From Obrimoposthia wandeli (taxonomy: Eukaryota): 64,000 nucleotides of DNA. Each line of letters starts with the position of its first letter. The stretch's first letter is position 1. The notes under the pieces were generated by a model. The model was not told the origin of the DNA. It made no database searches and worked only from the letters and a program-made list of their open reading frames with translations. This document shows positions 3,913-59,955 of this stretch, in pieces. The stretch is taken from positions 2,418,001 through 2,482,000 of the forward strand of contig CDROCS010000253.1 of the NCBI GenBank assembly GCA_977020255.1, in the 5' to 3' direction. The position numbers and the translations under genes were made by a program.

Positions 3913-4386
3913 ATGTCGGGTAAAAATAGACAAGTTAACTTTAACCTTGCTAATCCAATTCAGTTTTTAGCACTAGGTTTTGGTAGCGGACTAGCACCAA
4001 AAGCGCCAGGCACTTTTGGTACGCTTGCTGCGGTGCCATTATTTTTGCTAATGAGCGGCTTATCTCCATTATTCTATGGCTTACTGGTATTAGCTGTATG
4101 TATCTCAGGTATTTACATTTGCGGTAAAGCGGCTAGTGATGTTGGCGTTCACGACCATGGTGCCATTGTTTGGGATGAGTTCGCAGGTTTTTTTATAACG
4201 ATGTTTATGGTGCCTGTGAGTTGGCAGAGTGTTCTAGTCGGTTTTATCTTATTTCGAATTTTCGATATTGCTAAACCCTGGCCAATATCTGTTGCAGATA
4301 AAAAACTAACGGGTGGCTTTGGTATTATGTTTGATGACGTGTTGGCCGGAATATTTTCACTGGTTATTATGCACATTATTTTCTAA
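3913..4386 (+). CDS. pgpA: Phosphatidylglycerophosphatase A
   Basis: GFGSGLAPKAPGTFGT, IVWDEFAG, FRIFDIAKPWPI and GIMFDDVLAG motifs. Confidence 0.97.
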   Translation: MSGKNRQVNFNLANPIQFLALGFGSGLAPKAPGTFGTLAAVPLFLLMSGLSPLFYGLLVLAVCISGIYICGKAASDVGVHDHGAIVWDEFAGFFITMFMVPVSWQSVLVGFILFRIFDIAKPWPISVADKKLTGGFGIMFDDVLAGIFSLVIMHIIF

Positions 4387-52184: not shown

Positions 52185-53846
52185 ATGAGTATTCACCCTT
52201 TTGCCGGTAAACCCGCTCGTCCAGAAGATAGAATTAATATAGGTCAGTTAGTCAGTGACTATTTTTTACAAACGCCAGATGTAAATTTAGCAGCAGAGCA
52301 AGTCAGCTTTGGTACGTCTGGTCACCGAGGTTGTGCTAATAAACGCAGCTTTAATGAACAGCACATTCTTGCTATATGTCAGGCTATCGCTGAATATAGG
52401 CAACAGAATGCTATTAATGGGCCACTCTTTTTAGGTAAAGATACCCACGCGTTATCTGAGCCAGCTTTTGCCAATGCAATTTCTGTACTGGTTGCTAATG
52501 GCGTTAATGTTGTTGTTCAAGATGACTCTTTATCAGGAAAGGGCTTTACCCCTACGCCTGTTATATCTCGCTTAATCATTAGCCATAATAAATCAGCTTC
52601 TGAAAAATTTGCTGATGGTATTGTTATCACGCCTTCACATAATCCACCGAGCGATGGCGGTATTAAATATAATCCTCCTCATGGCGGTCCAGCAGAAGGT
52701 GGCATTACCAAGCAAATAGAGCTGCGCGCTAATGAAATAATTACCGCGGGTTTAGCTGATGTTAAACAGCTACCTTACCAGCAAGCATTACAATCATCAT
52801 TGCTCACTAAAGAAGACTTTATTGGTCATTATGTCCAGCAGATCGATCAAGTCATTGATATGCAAGCAATAGCCAAAGCAGGTATCACTATTGGTGTTGA
52901 CCCTTTAGGCGGCTCAGGTATTGCCTATTGGCCTGTTATAGCTAAACAATATCAGTTGAATATTACTGTCGTTAATGAAGTGGTCGATGGCAGTTTTGCT
53001 TTTATGCCATTAGATAAAGATGGCAAAATTCGCATGGATTGCTCGTCAAAATATGCCATGGCAGGATTAATTGCCATGAAAGATGATTTTGATATCAGTG
53101 TCGGTAATGATCCTGATTTTGACCGACATGGTATTGTCACGCCAAGTGGTGGTTTGATGAACCCTAATCATTATCTCGCCGTAGCTATCCATTATTTAAT
53201 GACCCATAGAGATTGGCCAAAGCATTGTAAAATAGGTAAAACGTTAGTATCAAGTTCACTCATTGATCGCGTTGCCAAACAGCTTTCACTGCCGTTATCA
53301 GAAGTACCTGTTGGTTTTAAATGGTTTGTCGACGGTTTAGCTGATGCAAGTTATGCTTTTGGCGGTGAAGAAAGTGCCGGTGCATCTTTTCTTTCTCGTG
53401 ATGGAAGTACGTGGACCACAGATAAAGATGGCTTTATCTTAGCTTTATTAGCGGCTGAAATTCTTGCTGTTACTGGTAAAGATCCTTATCAATATTACCT
53501 TGAACTTACTAAAACCTTGGGTCAACCATGTTACGGTCGAGTTGAAGCTGTTGCTTCATTTGAACAGAAACGCGTGCTAACAGCGTTATCAAGTGATGAT
53601 GTTAAAGCAAAAAACCTTGCGGGTGATAAAATTCTTCAAGTGTTGTCACATGCACCAGGTAATAATGCTGCGATCGGTGGTATCAAAGTGGTAACAGATA
53701 ACGGCTGGTTTGCTGCTCGTCCTTCTGGCACGGAAGAGATTTATAAAATCTACGCAGAAAGTTTTATTGATGACAACCACCTTCAAATAATTATTAGTGA
53801 GGCACAAGCTATTGTCGGTGCTTCATTTAAAGCGGCAGGCTTGTAA
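52185..53846 (+). CDS. pgm: Phosphoglucomutase
   Basis: FGTSGHRG, ITPSHNPP, NDPDFDRHG, GEESAG, ARPSGTE. Confidence 0.98.
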   Translation: MSIHPFAGKPARPEDRINIGQLVSDYFLQTPDVNLAAEQVSFGTSGHRGCANKRSFNEQHILAICQAIAEYRQQNAINGPLFLGKDTHALSEPAFANAISVLVANGVNVVVQDDSLSGKGFTPTPVISRLIISHNKSASEKFADGIVITPSHNPPSDGGIKYNPPHGGPAEGGITKQIELRANEIITAGLADVKQLPYQQALQSSLLTKEDFIGHYVQQIDQVIDMQAIAKAGITIGVDPLGGSGIAYWPVIAKQYQLNITVVNEVVDGSFAFMPLDKDGKIRMDCSSKYAMAGLIAMKDDFDISVGNDPDFDRHGIVTPSGGLMNPNHYLAVAIHYLMTHRDWPKHCKIGKTLVSSSLIDRVAKQLSLPLSEVPVGFKWFVDGLADASYAFGGEESAGASFLSRDGSTWTTDKDGFILALLAAEILAVTGKDPYQYYLELTKTLGQPCYGRVEAVASFEQKRVLTALSSDDVKAKNLAGDKILQVLSHAPGNNAAIGGIKVVTDNGWFAARPSGTEEIYKIYAESFIDDNHLQIIISEAQAIVGASFKAAGL

Positions 53847-53856
53847 ACTACTGCTA

Positions 53857-53894
53857 TTAAAGAGTTATTACTAGTTCTAGTAATAACTCTTTAA
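53857..53894. repeat. Perfect 18-bp AT-rich inverted repeat after pgm
   Basis: TTAAAGAGTTATTACTAG-TT-CTAGTAATAACTCTTTAA. Confidence 0.9.
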
Positions 53895-54165: not shown

Positions 54166-55347
54166 ATGAGCACAGAACTTTATAATGATGGACCAGTAGT
54201 GCATCAGCCTACTTTTATTGATGGAAGCAGTGTTGAAATTCCTGAGTTGAGAATTTTAGACCAAGACGGTACAACGTACCCCAATGCTGACTTACCTGAT
54301 ATAGATCAAGCGTTAGCGACTAAAATTTATCACACGCTTGCCTTTCATCGCGTATTGGATGAACGCATGGTGGCATCACAGCGCCAAGGCCGTTTGAGTT
54401 TTTATATGACCGCATTAGGTGAAGAAGCGACCAGTGTTGGTGGCGCTGCGGGTTTAGAGCCTCAAGATATGATCATGATGCAATATCGTGAACAAGGTGC
54501 CTTAATTTATCGTGGTTTTAATCTTGAAGATATAATGAATCAACTGTTTAGTAATGCTGGTGATTTAGGTAAAGGTCGTCAAATGCCTATACATTACGGC
54601 TCTAAAGCGCTGAACTGTATGACAGTATCTTCACCGCTTGCGACGCAAATTCCACAAGCGACAGGTTATGCTTACGGGCAAAAATTGCAAGGTCTTAATG
54701 CGGTAACTATTTGTTACTTTGGTGAAGGCGCCGCATCAGAAGGTGATTTTCATGCGGGCTTAAATATGGCCGCAGTACAAAAAGCCCCAGTGATCTTTTT
54801 CTGTCGAAATAATGGCTATGCGATTTCTACACCTGCCGATGAACAGTTTAAAGGTAATGGTATTGCTTCTCGTGGTGTCGGTTATGGCATTAAAACTATT
54901 CGTATTGACGGTAATGATATTCTCGCGGTACTTAAAGCCACGCAAATTGCACGTGCTTATGCGGTTAAAGAAAGTAAGCCGGTATTAATTGAAGCGATGT
55001 CGTATCGTCTTGGCGCGCATTCAACGTCTGACGATCCTTCCGGTTATCGTACCAAAGAAGAAGAAGCTAAGTGGCTGAGTCATGATCCTATTTTACGTAT
55101 GAAAAATTGGATGATAAAACAAAAATGGTGGGATGAAGCCCAAGAAACTGCACTATTTGAGAAGTATAGAGAAGAAATCTTAGCAGCAGTAAAAGTCGCT
55201 GAAAAAATAGATAAACCACATATAGATACCATGATAACCGATGTTTATGATGTGCCATCAGCGCAGTTACAAGCACAATTAGATGAAGTCAAAGCTCACG
55301 TCAATAAATACCCAGAAGCTTACCCATTTACCGCAGGGAAATTTTAA
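54166..55347 (+). CDS. bkdA1: Branched-chain 2-oxoacid dehydrogenase E1 alpha
   Basis: QRQGRLSFY, GRQMPIHYG, SSPLATQIPQATG, GEGAASEGDFH TPP motif, YRLGAHSTSDDP. Confidence 0.95.
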   Translation: MSTELYNDGPVVHQPTFIDGSSVEIPELRILDQDGTTYPNADLPDIDQALATKIYHTLAFHRVLDERMVASQRQGRLSFYMTALGEEATSVGGAAGLEPQDMIMMQYREQGALIYRGFNLEDIMNQLFSNAGDLGKGRQMPIHYGSKALNCMTVSSPLATQIPQATGYAYGQKLQGLNAVTICYFGEGAASEGDFHAGLNMAAVQKAPVIFFCRNNGYAISTPADEQFKGNGIASRGVGYGIKTIRIDGNDILAVLKATQIARAYAVKESKPVLIEAMSYRLGAHSTSDDPSGYRTKEEEAKWLSHDPILRMKNWMIKQKWWDEAQETALFEKYREEILAAVKVAEKIDKPHIDTMITDVYDVPSAQLQAQLDEVKAHVNKYPEAYPFTAGKF

Positions 55348-55349
55348 TC

Positions 55350-55436
55350 ATGGCGCAAATCTATATTGACCAAATGTATGGTATCAACACTGACTTCCAT
55401 GAAGCTTACCCAACTACAGCAGCAGGGAAATTTTAA
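55350..55436 (+). CDS. 28-aa mini-ORF 1 in the bkd operon ([28 protein letters not shown])
   Basis: ATG 2 nt after the bkdA1 stop, with the same AGGGA RBS context as bkdA2. Translation is not demonstrated. Confidence 0.55.
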   Translation: MAQIYIDQMYGINTDFHEAYPTTAAGKF

Positions 55437-55438
55437 TC

Positions 55439-55525
55439 ATGGCGCAAATCTATATTGACCAAATGTATGGTATCAACACTGACTTCAATGAAGCTTACCC
55501 AACTACAGCTGCAGGGAAATTTTAA
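55439..55525 (+). CDS. 28-aa mini-ORF 2 in the bkd operon ([28 protein letters not shown])
   Basis: Second repeat unit; its stop lies 2 nt before the bkdA2 ATG. Confidence 0.55.
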
Positions 55526-55527
55526 TC

Positions 55528-56505
55528 ATGGCGCAAAAAAACTTATTACACGCTATTAATAGTGCACTTGATATTGCTATGGCTGAAAATGAAAGTACGG
55601 TATGTTTTGGTGAAGATGTTGGTCATTTTGGTGGGGTATTTCGCGCCACCAGTGGCTTACAAGAAAAATATGGTAAAGCGCGTTGCTTTAATACCCCATT
55701 AGTCGAGCAGGGCATTATTGGCTTTGCTAATGGTCTAGCTGCCCAAGGCAGTGTTGCTATTGCTGAAATTCAATTTGCTGATTACATTTTCCCTGCTTTT
55801 GATCAAATCGTTAATGAAGCAGCTAAATTTCGTTACCGTAGCGGCAATGAATTCAACGTTGGTAAATTGACCATTCGTAGCCCATACGGTGGTGGTATTG
55901 CGGGGGGCTTGTACCATAGTCAATCACCAGAAGCTTACTTTGCCCATACTCCAGGCTTAAAAGTAGTTATTCCACGTAATCCATACCAAGCGAAAGGTTT
56001 ATTACTTGCTTCTATTCGTGATGATAACCCGGTGATATTTTTTGAACCAAAACGTTTATACCGAGCATCAGTTGGTGAAGTACCAGAAGAAGATTATCAA
56101 TTGCCTTTGGGTAAAGCTGAAGTAGTACAAACGGGCACTGATATCACTTTGCTTGCTTGGGGCGCACAAATGGAAATCATTGAAAAAGCAGCGCAAATGG
56201 CTAGCAATGATGGTATCTCTTGTGAAGTGGTAGATTTACGTACTATTTTACCTTGGGATATAGAAACTATTAGCAATTCTGTTATGAAAACAGGCCGTTT
56301 GCTCATTAGTCAAGAAGCACCATTAACTGCTGGATTTGCCAGTGAAATTGCTGCCACTATTCAAAGTGAATGCTTTTTACACTTAGAATCGCCTATTGCT
56401 CGTGTATGTGGTCTAGATACGCCATATCCATTAGCGTTAGAAAAAGAATATGTTAGTGATCACTTAAAAGTATATGAAGCAATCATAAAGAGCGTTAATT
56501 TTTAA
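55528..56505 (+). CDS. bkdA2: Branched-chain 2-oxoacid dehydrogenase E1 beta
   Basis: [49 protein letters not shown]. Confidence 0.95.
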
Positions 56506-56534
56506 CGATAACCCTTATTAGCAGGACACAGAAC

Positions 56535-57809
56535 ATGAGTATTGATTTTATATTACCTGATATTGGTGAAGGTATCGTTGAGTGTGAACTCGTCGAATGG
56601 TTAGTTAAAGAAGGTGAAATAATTGTTGAAGATCAGCCGATTGCTGATGTGATGACAGATAAAGCCTTAGTACAAATTCCTGCAATGCATTCAGGCGTTG
56701 TGGAAAAGCTTTATTATAAGCAAGGTGAAATTGCCAAAGTGCATTCTCCTCTTTTTGCTATGACTCCAGAAGGTGATGACAGCACTAACGATATTGTTGA
56801 AGTTACCGCGGAGCCAGAAGTTAAACCACAAACTGATATGGTAAAGGAGGATGGTGCAAATAACGAAGTCGCTGCACCATCATCAGTAAAAGATGAGCCT
56901 GTTGTTAGCCAGACTAAAACAAGCAATGGTAAAGCATTAGCAAGCCCGGCTGTTAGGCGTGCAGCGCGTGAACTTGATATTAATATCCATCAAGTTGCAG
57001 GCAGTGGTAAAAAAGGCCGTGTCTATAAAGATGATGTGGTCGCTTATAGCCAAAATGACTCGAGTGTTGTAGCGACAGTTATTGCTGGCGGTACTGTTAT
57101 CGGTGGTACAAGCGTAGAGCCAATTCGCGGTATTAAGAAGATAATGGCCACGGCGATGCAAAATAGTGTTAGTACTATTCCGCATTTTACTTATTGTGAA
57201 GAAATCGACCTAACTGAGCTTATCGCTTTACGCGGCGAATTAAAAGAAGTCTATGCTAAGCAAGATATAAAATTAACTATGATGCCGTTCTTTATGAAAG
57301 CTATGTCATTAGCGATTAAAGAATATCCATTGGTTAATTCAAAAGTAAATGATGATTGCACAGAGCTTACTTACTTTAATGATCATAATATTGGTATGGC
57401 GGTTGATTCTAAAGTGGGCTTACTTGTACCGAATATTAAGCAGGTACAAACTAAATCAATATTAGATTTAGCTAACGACATTATGCGTTTAACCAATGAT
57501 GCTCGTAGCGGACGTGTTGCCAGTGAAGATCTAAAAGGTGGCACTATTACCATTTCTAATATTGGTGCGATCGGCGGCACTGTGGCAACCCCTATCATCA
57601 ATAAGCCAGAAGTTGCTATTGTTGCATTAGGCAAGTTACAAAAATTACCACGCTATAATGAGCAAGGTGACGTAGAAGCGCGCAGTATTATGCAAGTGAG
57701 TTGGTCTGGCGATCATAGAGTTATAGATGGCGGCACTATCGCGCGTTTTTGTAACCTATGGAAATCATTCCTAGAAAAACCAAGCCATATGTTAGTCCAT
57801 ATGAGTTAG
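56535..57809 (+). CDS. bkdB: Branched-chain 2-oxoacid dehydrogenase E2 (dihydrolipoyl transacylase)
   Basis: One lipoyl domain (VMTDKA), ASPAVRRAARE E3-binding domain, DHRVIDG active site. Confidence 0.95.
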   Translation: MSIDFILPDIGEGIVECELVEWLVKEGEIIVEDQPIADVMTDKALVQIPAMHSGVVEKLYYKQGEIAKVHSPLFAMTPEGDDSTNDIVEVTAEPEVKPQTDMVKEDGANNEVAAPSSVKDEPVVSQTKTSNGKALASPAVRRAARELDINIHQVAGSGKKGRVYKDDVVAYSQNDSSVVATVIAGGTVIGGTSVEPIRGIKKIMATAMQNSVSTIPHFTYCEEIDLTELIALRGELKEVYAKQDIKLTMMPFFMKAMSLAIKEYPLVNSKVNDDCTELTYFNDHNIGMAVDSKVGLLVPNIKQVQTKSILDLANDIMRLTNDARSGRVASEDLKGGTITISNIGAIGGTVATPIINKPEVAIVALGKLQKLPRYNEQGDVEARSIMQVSWSGDHRVIDGGTIARFCNLWKSFLEKPSHMLVHMS

Positions 57810-57976: not shown

Positions 57977-59836
57977 CTAAAAACCACATTGTTTACCTTG
58001 GTTTTTGTTCTTCAACCAAACATGTAACGGTGCAAAGTAATCTAAAATAGCGGTTGCATCCATTTGCTCATTACCGGTAATGACTTTATACGCTTGCTGC
58101 CATGGCTGGCTTGAACCCATTTCTAGCATGGTATTAAGTGCAGTACCTGCTTCTTTTGAGTTATATATTGAACAACGATGAATTGGGTCAGTATTCCCTG
58201 AAATTTCACATAACGCACGATGGAATTCAAATTGCTGAATGTGTGCTAAGAAATAGCGGCTGTAAGGAACGCCAGCAGGTACGTGGTATTTAGCACCCGG
58301 GTCGAATGCATTAACATCACGGTCAATAGGCGCGGCTACACCTTGGTACTTCTCACGTAACTCCCACCATGACGTGTTGTAATTTTCAGGAGTAATCTCA
58401 CCAGAGTAAACTTTCCAACGCCATTGATCAACCATCAAACCAAAGGGAATGAAAGCGATTTTATCAAGGGCTTTTTTCATTAATAAGCCAATATCTTTTG
58501 ACTCATCCGGAATAGTATCAATTAGGCCTATTTCTTTTAAGTATTTAGGTGTAACTGACAATGCAATAGTATCGCCAATTGCTTCATGGAAACCGTCATT
58601 AGCACTGTTTTGGAAGTATACTGGTTGGTCTTTGTAAGCACGTTGATAGAAGTTATGCCCTAACTCATGGTGAATAACGTTAAATTCTTCACCTGTTTTT
58701 TGGATACACATTTTGATGCGAATATCATCTTTGGCATCAAGGTCCCATGCGCTGGCGTGACAAGTTACGTCTCTATCGGCAGGTTTAGTAAATAGTGAAC
58801 GACTATAAAAAGTCTCTGGTAAAGCATCAAAACCTAATGAAGTGAAGAACTTTTCAGCGCCTTTAACCATTTTTATTTCATCGTAGTTATGTGTAGCTAA
58901 TTGTTTAGTTACATCATAACCAGGATCGGCATCTTCTGGCGCAACTAAATCATAGATGTTACCCCAAGATTGAGCCCACATATTACCGAGTAAATGTGCA
59001 GGAATTGGCTTGTCTTGGGCAACTTTATCAGTACCGTAAGTTTCACCTAACTCTGTTCTTACATAACAATGTAAGTCATCGTATAAAGGCTTAACTTGTC
59101 CCCATAAACGATCAAGCTCTTTAGCAAAGTCATCAGCAGGCATGTCATAATTTGAACGCCACATTGCGCCTAAATCTTGATAACCTAGGCCTTTAGCACC
59201 TTCATTGGCAAGCTCAGCTTGACGGGTATAAAGTGGTTTCATTTCAGGGCTAATTTCACGCCAGCCAGACCACATTTCAAGTAGTTCATCATAATCACGA
59301 GAGGTCGCCATTTTAGCAGTCATATCGCCTAAGCTAAGTTTTTCACCTGCTTTAGTGGTATAGCTACCTTTACCGTAAAGACTACCAAGCTTAGCGCCAA
59401 TGGTTGCAAGTTCAGCTGATTTCTTTGGATCTTGTGGCGCTGGCATAACCAAACTTTGCTTTAATACATTTAATTGACGTCGTTGTGTTGGGTTAACGTC
59501 TACCTTATCAAAAGTCGCTGCTTGCATAGCGAATCTAACACCAGCATCAGTTGACTTCTGATCTGCTTCAGCGGCTAATGAAGCCGTATCCTCAGTAATG
59601 AAATTAGCGTAAATCCAAGCAGCACGTGAACCTTCTAAGTTTAACGTCACCAACTCTTTGGCAACGTTATCTAAGAATTGTTGGGCATCTGCTGCAGTTA
59701 ATGCTGCCTGTGTTGAAGTAGTGGTTACTTTTTCTGAAGAAGCTTGTTGGCTTGGCGCTTGATTGCACGCGGTTAACGAAGCGGCAATAACTAATGCAAG
59801 ACCGGTAAACTTAAATGTTTTGGTAATATTTTTCAT
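57977..59836 (-). CDS. Peptidyl-dipeptidase A / ACE-like M2 metallopeptidase lipoprotein
   Basis: HHELGH zinc motif, GFHEAIGD third ligand, AHLLGNMWAQSW, FDPGAKYHV; lipobox LTAC; start probably at MKNITK (59836). Confidence 0.93.
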   Translation of the reverse strand: MKNITKTFKFTGLALVIAASLTACNQAPSQQASSEKVTTTSTQAALTAADAQQFLDNVAKELVTLNLEGSRAAWIYANFITEDTASLAAEADQKSTDAGVRFAMQAATFDKVDVNPTQRRQLNVLKQSLVMPAPQDPKKSAELATIGAKLGSLYGKGSYTTKAGEKLSLGDMTAKMATSRDYDELLEMWSGWREISPEMKPLYTRQAELANEGAKGLGYQDLGAMWRSNYDMPADDFAKELDRLWGQVKPLYDDLHCYVRTELGETYGTDKVAQDKPIPAHLLGNMWAQSWGNIYDLVAPEDADPGYDVTKQLATHNYDEIKMVKGAEKFFTSLGFDALPETFYSRSLFTKPADRDVTCHASAWDLDAKDDIRIKMCIQKTGEEFNVIHHELGHNFYQRAYKDQPVYFQNSANDGFHEAIGDTIALSVTPKYLKEIGLIDTIPDESKDIGLLMKKALDKIAFIPFGLMVDQWRWKVYSGEITPENYNTSWWELREKYQGVAAPIDRDVNAFDPGAKYHVPAGVPYSRYFLAHIQQFEFHRALCEISGNTDPIHRCSIYNSKEAGTALNTMLEMGSSQPWQQAYKVITGNEQMDATAILDYFAPLHVWLKNKNQGKQCGF

Positions 59837-59955
59837 TTTTATAATCATTATTAAAAATAAATTGTTAGGTGAAGATAGTATATAAAATTGTTTGGTTGAT
59901 ACACAGTTTATAAGGAAAATAGTTACTTAGGATAATAATCACTCAAATTTAGAGC

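Follow-up and report, generated by a model that had tools for sequence, protein, structure and literature searches.

Tandem 28-Residue Mini-Cistrons between the E1-alpha and E1-beta Genes of a Colwellia bkd Operon: A Candidate Microprotein Derived from the E1-alpha Tail

In one Colwellia clade, the genes for the E1-alpha and E1-beta subunits of the branched-chain 2-oxoacid dehydrogenase are separated by a tandem array of 89-nt units, each of which forms a small open reading frame (ORF) ending in a diverged copy of the E1-alpha C-terminus. Codon comparisons among relatives show purifying selection at the amino-acid level on the last 11 residues of the predicted peptide, while the first 16 residues drift. 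The best explanation, to which a probability of roughly 45% is assigned, is a translated and selected micro-protein that would mimic the E1-alpha tail and modulate E1.

Organization of the Locus

The window, i.e., the whole stretch of DNA analyzed, comprises 64,000 nt of contig CDROCS010000253.1 (positions 2,418,001 to 2,482,000, forward strand) in assembly GCA_977020255.1 of Obrimoposthia wandeli. The contig is bacterial and lies within a eukaryote assembly of 1.35 Gb and 6912 contigs.

The Colwellia bkd operon is encoded entirely on the + strand and reads, from the ORF listing, E1-alpha, p1, p2, E1-beta, and E2. The bkdA1 gene (54166..55347, +) encodes the 393-aa E1-alpha, which ends in KYPEAYPFTAGKF before the stop codon and matches Pfam E1_dh with an E value of 4e-97. 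It aligns with the human BCKDHA structure 1dtw_A (E 1e-119), and human BCKDHA structures score above PDH E1-alpha. The 325-aa E1-beta is encoded by bkdA2 (55528..56505, +; Pfam Transket_pyr and Transketolase_C), the first 10 nt of which, ATGGCGCAAA, head every unit. The last gene of the operon in the window, bkdB (56535..57809, +), encodes the 424-aa E2 lipoamide acyltransferase (Pfam Biotin_lipoyl, E3_binding, and 2-oxoacid_dh). The Pfam assignments thus place an E1_dh alpha subunit, a transketolase-like beta subunit, and a lipoyl-bearing E2 in the order of a bkd operon.

Tandem Repeats Finder (TRF) reports a single array at 55315-55537 with a period of 89, 2.5 copies, 94% matches, and a score of 393. 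The partial first copy (55315..55349, +) consists of the E1-alpha tail codons for EAYPFTAGKF, the stop TAA, and a TC spacer; the whole-assembly search recovers it as a partial match of 84% that covers unit positions 52-89, and these tail codons are the parent of the motif in the units. Two full units follow, containing the mini-ORFs p1 (55350..55436, +) and p2 (55439..55525, +), each of 28 aa, the p1 coordinates including the stop. A unit begins with 10 nt identical to the E1-beta start, continues with 41 nt and then GAAGCTTACCCA..GGGAAATTTTAA, and closes with TC. The two units are 98% identical, and each is an intact 28-codon ORF. Their two differing sites are C at 55398 versus A at 55487, which changes His17 of p1 to Asn in p2, and A at 55421 versus T at 55510, a synonymous change in an Ala codon.

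A Shine-Dalgarno (SD)-like AGGGAA motif precedes p1 (55335..55340, +), 9 nt before its ATG, and recurs with the same spacing ahead of p2 (55424..55429, +) and bkdA2 (55513..55518, +). At 3/3 junctions, AGGGAA is followed by TAA, 2 nt, and ATG, such that the native E1-alpha/E1-beta pattern is kept. The sequence, the ORF listing, and TRF therefore agree with the initial annotation, which had described a bkdA1-p1-p2-bkdA2 chain of two unbroken units with two differences, each carrying the ribosome-binding site and stop-TC-ATG spacing of the true junction.

Distribution and Copy Number

In most Colwelliaceae, the E1-alpha stop and the E1-beta ATG are separated by 2 nt or overlap by 1 nt. In one Colwellia clade, the gap is 91, 180, or 269 nt, corresponding to one, two, or three units. 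Profile searches detect units in 14 of 55 Colwellia genomes, all belonging to this clade, and in 5 of the 401 genomes of a family-level sample; in both sets they are always found at the E1-alpha/E1-beta junction. Several metagenome contigs likewise carry them at this junction, while two further metagenome matches (L088 and L092) were rejected as unit loci, being chance matches in unrelated genes. Words of the unit sequence are also present in several marine metatranscriptome runs. Within the whole assembly (G000), no further copy of the unit was found, and a dispersed or mobile repeat of the REP/MITE type is rejected on the basis of this single locus and the constant position of the units in relatives.

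The earlier suggestion of a copy-number-variable locus is confirmed by the occurrence of 0, 1, 2, or 3 units across Colwellia species, including at least four precise losses within the unit-bearing clade. Near-identical copies inside single genomes (WIN, L002, and L109) indicate that duplication is ongoing. In the sequencing run X2, one contig crosses the junction with a single unit, skipping 89 nt, which suggests a copy-number difference within the species as well. L005 and L007 have two old paralogous unit types in common, and the 4-fold sites of the flanking genes differ by 0.4-0.6 between unit-bearing lineages. Judged by these comparisons, the element is old.

Conservation of the Open Frame

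All of the distinct 89-nt units (25/25) are open in the coding frame, whereas 6/18 and 0/18 are open in the other two frames. The lack of in-frame stops is by itself marginal (P about 0.05). The six start and stop positions show no changes, whereas parsimony assigns 1.2-1.6 steps per site to the remaining positions (P 0.004 to 0.0007), and the fast-evolving part of the unit contains no indels. Every relative keeps the junction of AGGGAA, stop, 2 nt, and ATG.

The frame is broken in only two units, namely by a 35-nt internal duplication in L008 and by a 2-nt deletion in the unit u2 of L086, the latter possibly an assembly error; one further unit carries an in-frame expansion. Frame-disrupting decay in relatives, which the initial annotation had named as grounds for abandoning its proposal, is thus confined to these two cases, whereas all 25 distinct full-length units are open. 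Because of the frame breaks in L008 and L086 together with the repeated precise losses, the element must be regarded as dispensable.

Selection on the Peptide

Codon models applied to codons 18-28 give an omega of 0.21 (p=1.2e-4), with values of 5.8 and 1.2 in the +1 and +2 frames used as controls. The material for all selection tests is small, consisting of 33 nt in 25 short sequences that recombine. The unit-specific codons for Thr-Thr-Ala-Ala (TTAA) alone give an omega of 0.15 (p=0.004). Codons 2-16 are unconstrained, with omega values of 1.4-1.9. By parsimony, 16 synonymous and 10 non-synonymous events fall on 8.3 and 24.7 sites, respectively (p=1e-4); of the non-synonymous events, 8 are placed on tips. 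Within a genome, part of the synonymous variation in the EAYP codons follows that of the E1-alpha tail. This hints at gene conversion, a process that cannot account for TTAA.

Likeness to the E1-alpha Tail

The C-terminal 11 residues of the unit keep 9 of the 10 residues of the E1-alpha tail, EAYPFTAGKF. The difference lies in a Phe-to-Thr replacement and the gain of one Ala, such that Thr-Thr-Ala-Ala stands for Phe-Thr-Ala. The Tyr within EAYP is invariant in the units and corresponds to Y386 of E1-alpha, which aligns with Y393 of human BCKDHA. As the title of a 1991 paper states, Y393N impedes E1 assembly (Fisher et al. 1991). The proposal of the initial annotation that the peptides mimic the E1-alpha C-terminus is thereby strengthened, if indirectly, in that frame-specific selection (omega 0.21, p=1e-4) acts on a segment whose Tyr is aligned to human Y393. 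Homology to the interaction segment of a larger protein, the absence of its other domains, and amino-acid constraint on the shared segment in both codon models and parsimony are features of a microProtein.

The Phe-to-Thr and Ala changes may mean that the peptide no longer fits the site of the tail. The peptide has no Pfam domain, and BLASTP returned no alignment between it and the E1-alpha C-terminus. A predicted complex of E1-beta with the 28-aa peptide scored 0.00, a value obtained with a peptide under the calibrated size and with alignments not used, and one that carries no weight in either direction on binding.

Origin and Proposed Mechanism

Compared at the predicted in-register offset, the 41-nt middle of the unit matches the E1-alpha codons just upstream at 18/41 positions, a value reached by 29 of 2118 offsets (p about 0.01). 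A gapped BLOSUM alignment of residues 2-17 with E1-alpha upstream of EAYP is no better than shuffles (z at most 1.4), and the similarity, seen in the ungapped nucleotide comparison only, is suggestive. The unit fits an old 86-nt tandem duplication that spanned the junction, gained 3 nt, and has since diverged. The earlier view, which denied a simple duplication of the present junction, accordingly holds for the sequence as it now stands but probably not for its origin.

The following course of events is proposed. In the ancestor of one Colwellia clade, a tandem duplication would have copied about 86 nt over the E1-alpha stop and the E1-beta start, namely the last 25-26 E1-alpha codons, TAA, TC, and the initial 10 nt of bkdA2. 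As the sum of 10 and 41 nt is divisible by three, the E1-beta ATG in the copy would have come to lie in frame with the copied E1-alpha tail. The outcome would have been a self-contained cistron preceded by an SD-like motif and ending 2 nt ahead of the following ATG, a layout that should therefore be read by the ribosome traffic coupling E1-alpha to E1-beta. As the frame in relatives shows, this cistron has since been retained as an open ORF.

Given that the C-terminal 11 residues are selected and the first 16 drift, the product itself probably matters, in addition to its being translated. Since the conserved part nearly duplicates the E1-alpha tail, including the Y393-equivalent Tyr, the free peptide would most likely occupy, or compete for, the tail docking site. 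From that site in alpha2beta2, it would modulate the assembly or stability of E1. Roughly one peptide would be made per unit per E1-beta. Unequal recombination or slippage between the identical junctions would shift the unit number (0 to 3), which would set the peptide dosage and perhaps the yield of E1-beta.

An extended version of this proposal can be put forward only tentatively. The element would be a naturally evolved bacterial microProtein, in which a freed tail co-translated with E1-beta binds the docking site and tunes alpha2beta2 assembly or stability, and in which the array of 0-3 copies sets the dose. The setting would be a clade of cold- and pressure-adapted Colwellia, in which oligomer assembly would be physically stressed.

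Alternative Readings

The main rival, although somewhat unlikely, is that the units serve as a translational relay only. The ORFs would be kept open such that E1-beta translation stays coupled to that of E1-alpha, the peptide itself would be inert, and the number of units may tune the E1-alpha:E1-beta ratio; a frame break would then uncouple E1-beta or expose untranslated mRNA. Each unit has the sequence attributes of a relay ORF, with its own start and SD-like motif, a stop near the next start, and a frame open beyond chance. Invariant starts and stops, the AGGGAA, stop, 2 nt, and ATG arrangement at every junction, the lack of constraint on codons 2-16, and an unusually unstructured region, as initiation regions should be, are all consistent with this function. 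Coupling declines with the distance between stop and start (PMC12548453), and 89 nt could therefore be inserted with coupling preserved only if the spacer is translated. However, a relay leaves the frame-specific selection on residues 18-28 unexplained, especially that on the TTAA codons, which lie upstream of the SD motif and vary freely at third positions only. Furthermore, a precise deletion between the flanking repeats restores a good 2-nt junction, so that there would be no reason for retention unless a lower beta yield is useful. The relay offered by the initial annotation thus accounts for the starts, stops, and junctions but not, when taken alone, for the constraint at the amino-acid level.

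It is improbable that the peptide is a translated and selected small protein directed at a target other than E1, such as a partner of the ..AGKF C-terminus, a protease, or a membrane or regulatory target, with the likeness to the tail being a mark of origin only. Selection on the C-terminal 11 residues would be equally expected in such a case, and the conserved, unit-specific Phe-to-Thr change and extra Ala show that the peptide first moved away from the true tail and was afterwards maintained. In contrast, its position within the E1-alpha/E1-beta junction, coupled to both genes, points to stoichiometric co-synthesis with E1; 9 of 10 tail residues are kept, including the assembly-critical Tyr, and no other candidate partner is evident.

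A neutral leftover of slippage duplication, with a drifting copy number and an ORF and peptide free of selection, had been left standing by the initial annotation and is now very unlikely. The range of 0 to 3 copies, the near-identical copies within genomes, the repeated losses, and the two frame-broken units would all be expected of such a leftover. Against this, all 25 distinct full-length units are open with invariant starts and stops (P<=0.004), and omega is 0.21 in frame versus 5.8 and 1.2 out of frame. The units also persist across lineages with a 40-60% difference at synonymous sites, although flanking direct repeats favor their deletion.

Several other elements were considered and rejected. 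An RNA element is disfavored by a fold weaker than that of shuffled sequences (MFE -36.5 versus -45.2 as the mean of shuffles, z +2.0), and there is neither an Rfam match nor an excess of promoters or terminators; no terminator-like site occurs in 55300-55540. A leader peptide or attenuator sensing branched-chain amino acids is rejected, as the Ile and Val positions lie in the unconstrained part and an attenuator is absent. Reading of the sequence gave no sign of a programmed frameshift or readthrough from E1-alpha into the unit, the frame being offset 5 nt after the TAA with no canonical slippery heptamer in register.

Logan contigs from the source-like run X1 show a depth of 68 for the unitig at 55333-55420 compared with 33-39 in the flanks, about twice the flank depth and thus indicative of two real copies; these contigs, the only material of the depth check, provide neither RNA ends nor an exact copy number for X2. 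A false duplication of the junction in this assembly is therefore next to impossible: short-read contigs do break within the repeat and the X2 contig crosses it with one unit, but the unit depth is doubled, the two copies differ at two sites, and independent assemblies of other species, among them a complete 5.4-Mb genome with three units, carry 1-3 units at the same place.

Comparison with Known Systems

Small proteins encoded inside the operons of the complexes that they join are exemplified by KdpF in kdpFABC and CydX in cydABX. The unit peptide resembles them in its length of less than 50 aa, in having escaped annotation, in the location of its ORF between or beside subunit genes, and in its predicted co-translation with the subunits. 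KdpF and CydX are membrane helices with sequences unrelated to their partners. In contrast, the predicted unit peptide is soluble-looking, is a diverged copy of its putative partner's C-terminal tail, and is encoded by 0-3 tandem copies.

MicroProteins (miPs) of plants and animals and dominant-negative fragments in E. coli are short products that carry only an interaction segment (PMC9638782, PMC9245647). The unit peptide likewise comprises only such a segment and could compete with, or modulate, the parent complex. While miPs stem from eukaryotic paralogues or splice forms and the E. coli fragments were engineered, the present predicted fragment would have arisen naturally in a bacterial operon through a junction-spanning tandem duplication.

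The stop and start codons 2 nt apart, the SD motif inside the upstream ORF at three junctions, and the involvement of genes for the subunits of a heteromer are shared with systems of termination-reinitiation coupling (PMC12548453). The known cases join two real genes directly, whereas here a chain of duplicated mini-cistrons recreates the junction. No description of chained duplicated mini-cistrons, or of another equivalent, was found in the searchable literature. Leader peptides of amino-acid operons are also short ORFs in operons of amino-acid metabolism. The unit differs from them in being internal rather than 5', in lacking a terminator/antiterminator structure or a run of regulatory codons, and in having its conserved part at the C-terminus.

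The human BCKDHA mutation Y393N is the Mennonite maple syrup urine disease (MSUD) mutation. E1-alpha and the human tail correspond at each residue of the ExYP motif, and the unit keeps EAYP. However, the human tail is part of a 400-aa subunit, whereas the unit encodes a predicted free product of 28 aa with Thr-Thr-Ala-Ala in place of Phe-Thr-Ala.

The locus illustrates the cost of not calling ORFs of fewer than 30 codons: for want of such calls, the peptides are missing from a collection of 15 billion proteins. Should the peptide be produced and act on E1, it would be a clear natural bacterial case of a gene born from a few dozen bases, in which the newborn ORF would have acquired a ribosome-binding site, start, stop, and interaction motif in one step because the duplication copied a cistron junction. 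It would also provide a new regulator for the much-studied 2-oxoacid dehydrogenase E1 family, the tail Tyr of which is the human Mennonite MSUD site, and would demonstrate dosing of a small protein through tandem copy number. Even if the units act only as a relay, the array is a natural experiment on the reach of chained translational coupling.

Anatomy and origin of the repeat

The bkd operon occupies 54166-57809 on the forward strand and, on the basis of its ORFs and Pfam domains, encodes E1-alpha (54166-55347; E1_dh), E1-beta (55528-56505; Transket_pyr and Transketolase_C), and E2 (56535-57809; lipoyl, E3-binding, and catalytic domains). E1-alpha matches the solved structure of human BCKDHA (E 1e-119). 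Two 28-codon mini-ORFs, p1 (55350-55436) and p2 (55439-55525), lie on the same strand between E1-alpha and E1-beta, in a single array at 55315-55537 (Tandem Repeats Finder; period 89, 2.5 copies, score 393). Each 89-nt unit comprises, in order, the first 10 nt of E1-beta, 41 nt, a near copy of the last E1-alpha codons, and TAA followed by TC; consequently, the arrangement AGGGAA, 4 nt, TAA, 2 nt, ATG recurs at all three junctions. Two sites distinguish the full units from each other, with a His/Asn difference at one and a synonymous change at the other. Sequence, ORFs, and repeat detection thus agree with the anatomy described in the initial annotation: cistrons in a chain whose coupling signals are preserved.

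Two neighboring features were also observed. Convergent to the operon, a 623-aa ORF (57977-59848, reverse strand) carries an HExxH motif and an N-terminal lipoprotein-like signal, and by eye resembles an M2 (angiotensin-converting-enzyme-like) peptidyl-dipeptidase. A terminator-like palindrome with a perfect 17-bp stem and few G-C pairs lies at 53857-53894 (forward strand), just 3′ of a phosphoglucomutase-like gene (52185-53846).

The 41-nt middle had been considered novel, and neither a gapped protein-level comparison with E1-alpha (similarity not significant) nor BLASTP against E1-alpha (no match) relates the two. However, an ungapped comparison of the unit consensus with the 41 nt of the E1-alpha consensus just upstream of GAAGC, the offset predicted by a simple junction-spanning duplication, yields a weak in-register match at 18/41 positions, against a mean of 10.9 (sd 2.8) over 2118 offsets, 29 of which reach 18/41 or better. 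Single-genome shuffle tests of this match give p values of 0.005-0.03 in five of six cases. The arithmetic also fits: 41 + 35 + 10 = 86 nt, to which one extra Ala codon adds up to 89, and since 10 + 41 = 51 nt, the E1-beta ATG falls in frame with the copied E1-alpha codons. Because of the in-register match and the arithmetic, we read the unit as a probable old tandem duplication of the E1-alpha/E1-beta junction. It would have been born as Met-Ala-Gln plus the last ~25 E1-alpha residues, after which the front half would have drifted and the tail been held.

Distribution and history

The loci gathered around E1-alpha homologues in species genomes all belong to Colwelliaceae. In most, 2 nt separate the E1-alpha stop from the E1-beta ATG, or the two overlap by 1 nt; the gap is longer in one clade, measuring 91 nt (one unit) or 180 nt (two units) in several loci each and 269 nt (three units) in L097 and L109. 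Of the options in the initial annotation, a copy-number-variable locus is therefore established, with 0, 1, 2, or 3 units across Colwellia loci. A peptide profile search finds units in 14 of 55 genus genomes and 5 of 401 sampled family genomes, always at this junction, and a metagenome scan adds more divergent ones (N-termini e.g. MSQQNIDLV.. and MDKIYIEKE..). L097, from a complete 5.4-Mb Colwellia genome, holds three intact units (1323-1589), two near-identical with TTSA replacing TTAA and one older. Several marine metatranscriptomes (runs X15-X28, at least five studies) contain 2-3 of 12 sampled 31-mers of the unit region, hinting at the presence of unit-bearing bkd mRNA in the sea.

In a tree of E1-alpha plus E1-beta, all unit-bearing loci fall in one clade, and its sister clade lacks the unit. 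A bare 2-nt junction occurs in at least four lineages inside the clade (L079 beside L008; L006 beside L005/L007; L003/L010/L013; L014/L016), and the simplest history would be one gain followed by several precise losses. The paired units of L005 and L007 are old paralogues, each nearer to its counterpart in the other of the two species, as well as to the lone units of L004 or L077, while the copies within the window, L002, and L109 are nearly identical; duplication, homogenization, and loss are therefore ongoing. When unit-bearing lineages are compared, the flanking genes differ at 4-fold sites by 0.4-0.6, and the units by ~0.27 in the front part and ~0.10 in the tail part.

Altered units were also observed. 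In L008 (C. marinimaniae MTCD1; 4185-4308, gap 126 nt), a 35-nt internal duplication breaks the unit, and the shifted ORF enters E1-beta out of frame. L079 (Colwellia sp. TT2012), with nearly identical flanking genes, has a bare 2-nt junction (4179-4185), suggesting decay and loss within a hadal lineage in the very recent past. In L009 (C. ponticola; 4185-4303, gap 121 nt; also L112), a 15-nt segment encoding EAYPV is triplicated in frame, giving a 38-aa ORF that ends in AAGKC; the assembly-motif itself is thus amplified. In L086, a metagenome contig close to L002, unit 2 (upstream of 4884) lacks 2 nt within its TTAA codons and is thereby fused in frame to E1-beta as a 34-residue N-terminal extension; this could reflect either a natural fusion or an error in sequencing.

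Reading frame and selection

Each of the 25 distinct 89-nt units keeps an open frame between ATG and TAA, and none carries an indel in its fast-evolving half. On a tree of the first 18 units (98 parsimony steps), the six positions of the start and stop codons carry no step, compared with an ORF mean of 1.2-1.6 steps per site (P ~0.004 to 0.0007). The lack of new stops taken alone is a weak argument for upkeep of the ORF (P ~0.05 by chance). The +1 frame is open in 6/18 units and the +2 frame in 0/18.

Codon models (IQ-TREE GY+F1X4, 25 units, tree built on unit nucleotides) divide the ORF into two parts, and the 18-unit set gives the same picture. Codons 2-16 have an omega (dN/dS) of 1.9 (p = 0.03 vs omega = 1) and codons 18-28 an omega of 0.21 (p = 1.2e-4); the latter nucleotides read out of frame give 5.8 in +1 (p = 0.007) and 1.2 in +2 (p = 0.68). 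The TTAA codons alone have an omega of 0.15 (p = 0.004) and cannot be refreshed by gene conversion from the E1-alpha tail, because the true tail has FTA. Parsimony counts are concordant, with 16 synonymous vs 10 non-synonymous events in codons 18-28 (8.3 and 24.7 sites; p = 1e-4), 8 of the 10 on tips, and 12 vs 75 in codons 2-17. As caveats, the sequences tested are very short, the tree derives from the data under test, and units recombine; in addition, the EAYP codons show some co-variation with the tail of E1-alpha in their own genome. The analysis thus shows that the frame is maintained and that the last 11 residues are constrained at the amino-acid level.

Proposed function and alternatives

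The observation in the initial annotation is confirmed, and its interpretation is supported in part. The mini-ORFs would be translated by ribosomes flowing from E1-alpha to E1-beta, and their product probably matters. The conserved segment nearly reproduces the C-terminal tail of E1-alpha, and its invariant Tyr aligns with human Y393. The Y393N mutant remains as alpha-beta dimers, since the tail contacts the other beta subunit. Fisher et al. (1991) reportedly found that this mutation impedes E1 assembly. Because of this likeness and the role of Y393, the most specific reading is a free E1-alpha-tail mimic that would modulate alpha2beta2 assembly or stability. Such a mimic would occupy or compete for the docking site of the tail, at a dose set by unit number. 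The proposed mimicry of the E1-alpha C-terminus gains indirect support from the constraint and the aligned Tyr.

The main rival is a pure relay, also raised initially, in which translation itself is all that counts. It accounts for the preserved junctions but leaves unexplained both the constraint on TTAA and the long retention of a deletable insert; it is compatible with the data but insufficient alone, and we consider it possible but doubtful. A translated peptide that acts on something other than E1 is less probable again. A neutral remnant is decidedly unlikely, given the low omega of codons 18-28, the open units, and the unchanged start and stop positions. An attenuator, riboswitch, or REP-like element was ruled out: RNA 55300-55560 folds worse than shuffles (z +2.0), and the junction region has no Rfam match and no excess of terminators or promoters.

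A falsely duplicated junction can be set aside almost entirely, as the unitig common to both units (55333-55420) has a depth of 68 vs 33-39 in the flanks (Logan contigs, source-like run X1), which fits two real copies, although one low-depth contig from another organism's run (X2) spans the junction with a single unit, which may represent either a genuine one-unit form or collapse of the repeat. No further unit copies were found across the whole assembly. As the latter has 6912 contigs totaling 1.35 Gb, the window belongs to a Colwellia contig within a eukaryote assembly; this Colwellia-like contig, at least 2.48 Mb long, presumably comes from a contaminant or an associate of the eukaryotic host.

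Relation to known systems

A literature search for an equivalent system found no published report, and a 15-billion-protein collection lacks ten unit peptides, among them those of the complete genome. The mini-ORFs are classified here as a putative small protein or microProtein that is embedded in an operon and arose through duplication of a junction. KdpF and CydX, operon-encoded small subunits, are among the closest concepts. Close concepts are also microProteins and dominant-negative fragments (PMC9638782, PMC9245647) and termination-reinitiation coupling (PMC12548453). In contrast to the mini-ORFs, none of these describes duplicated-junction mini-cistrons or a natural bacterial subunit-tail fragment.
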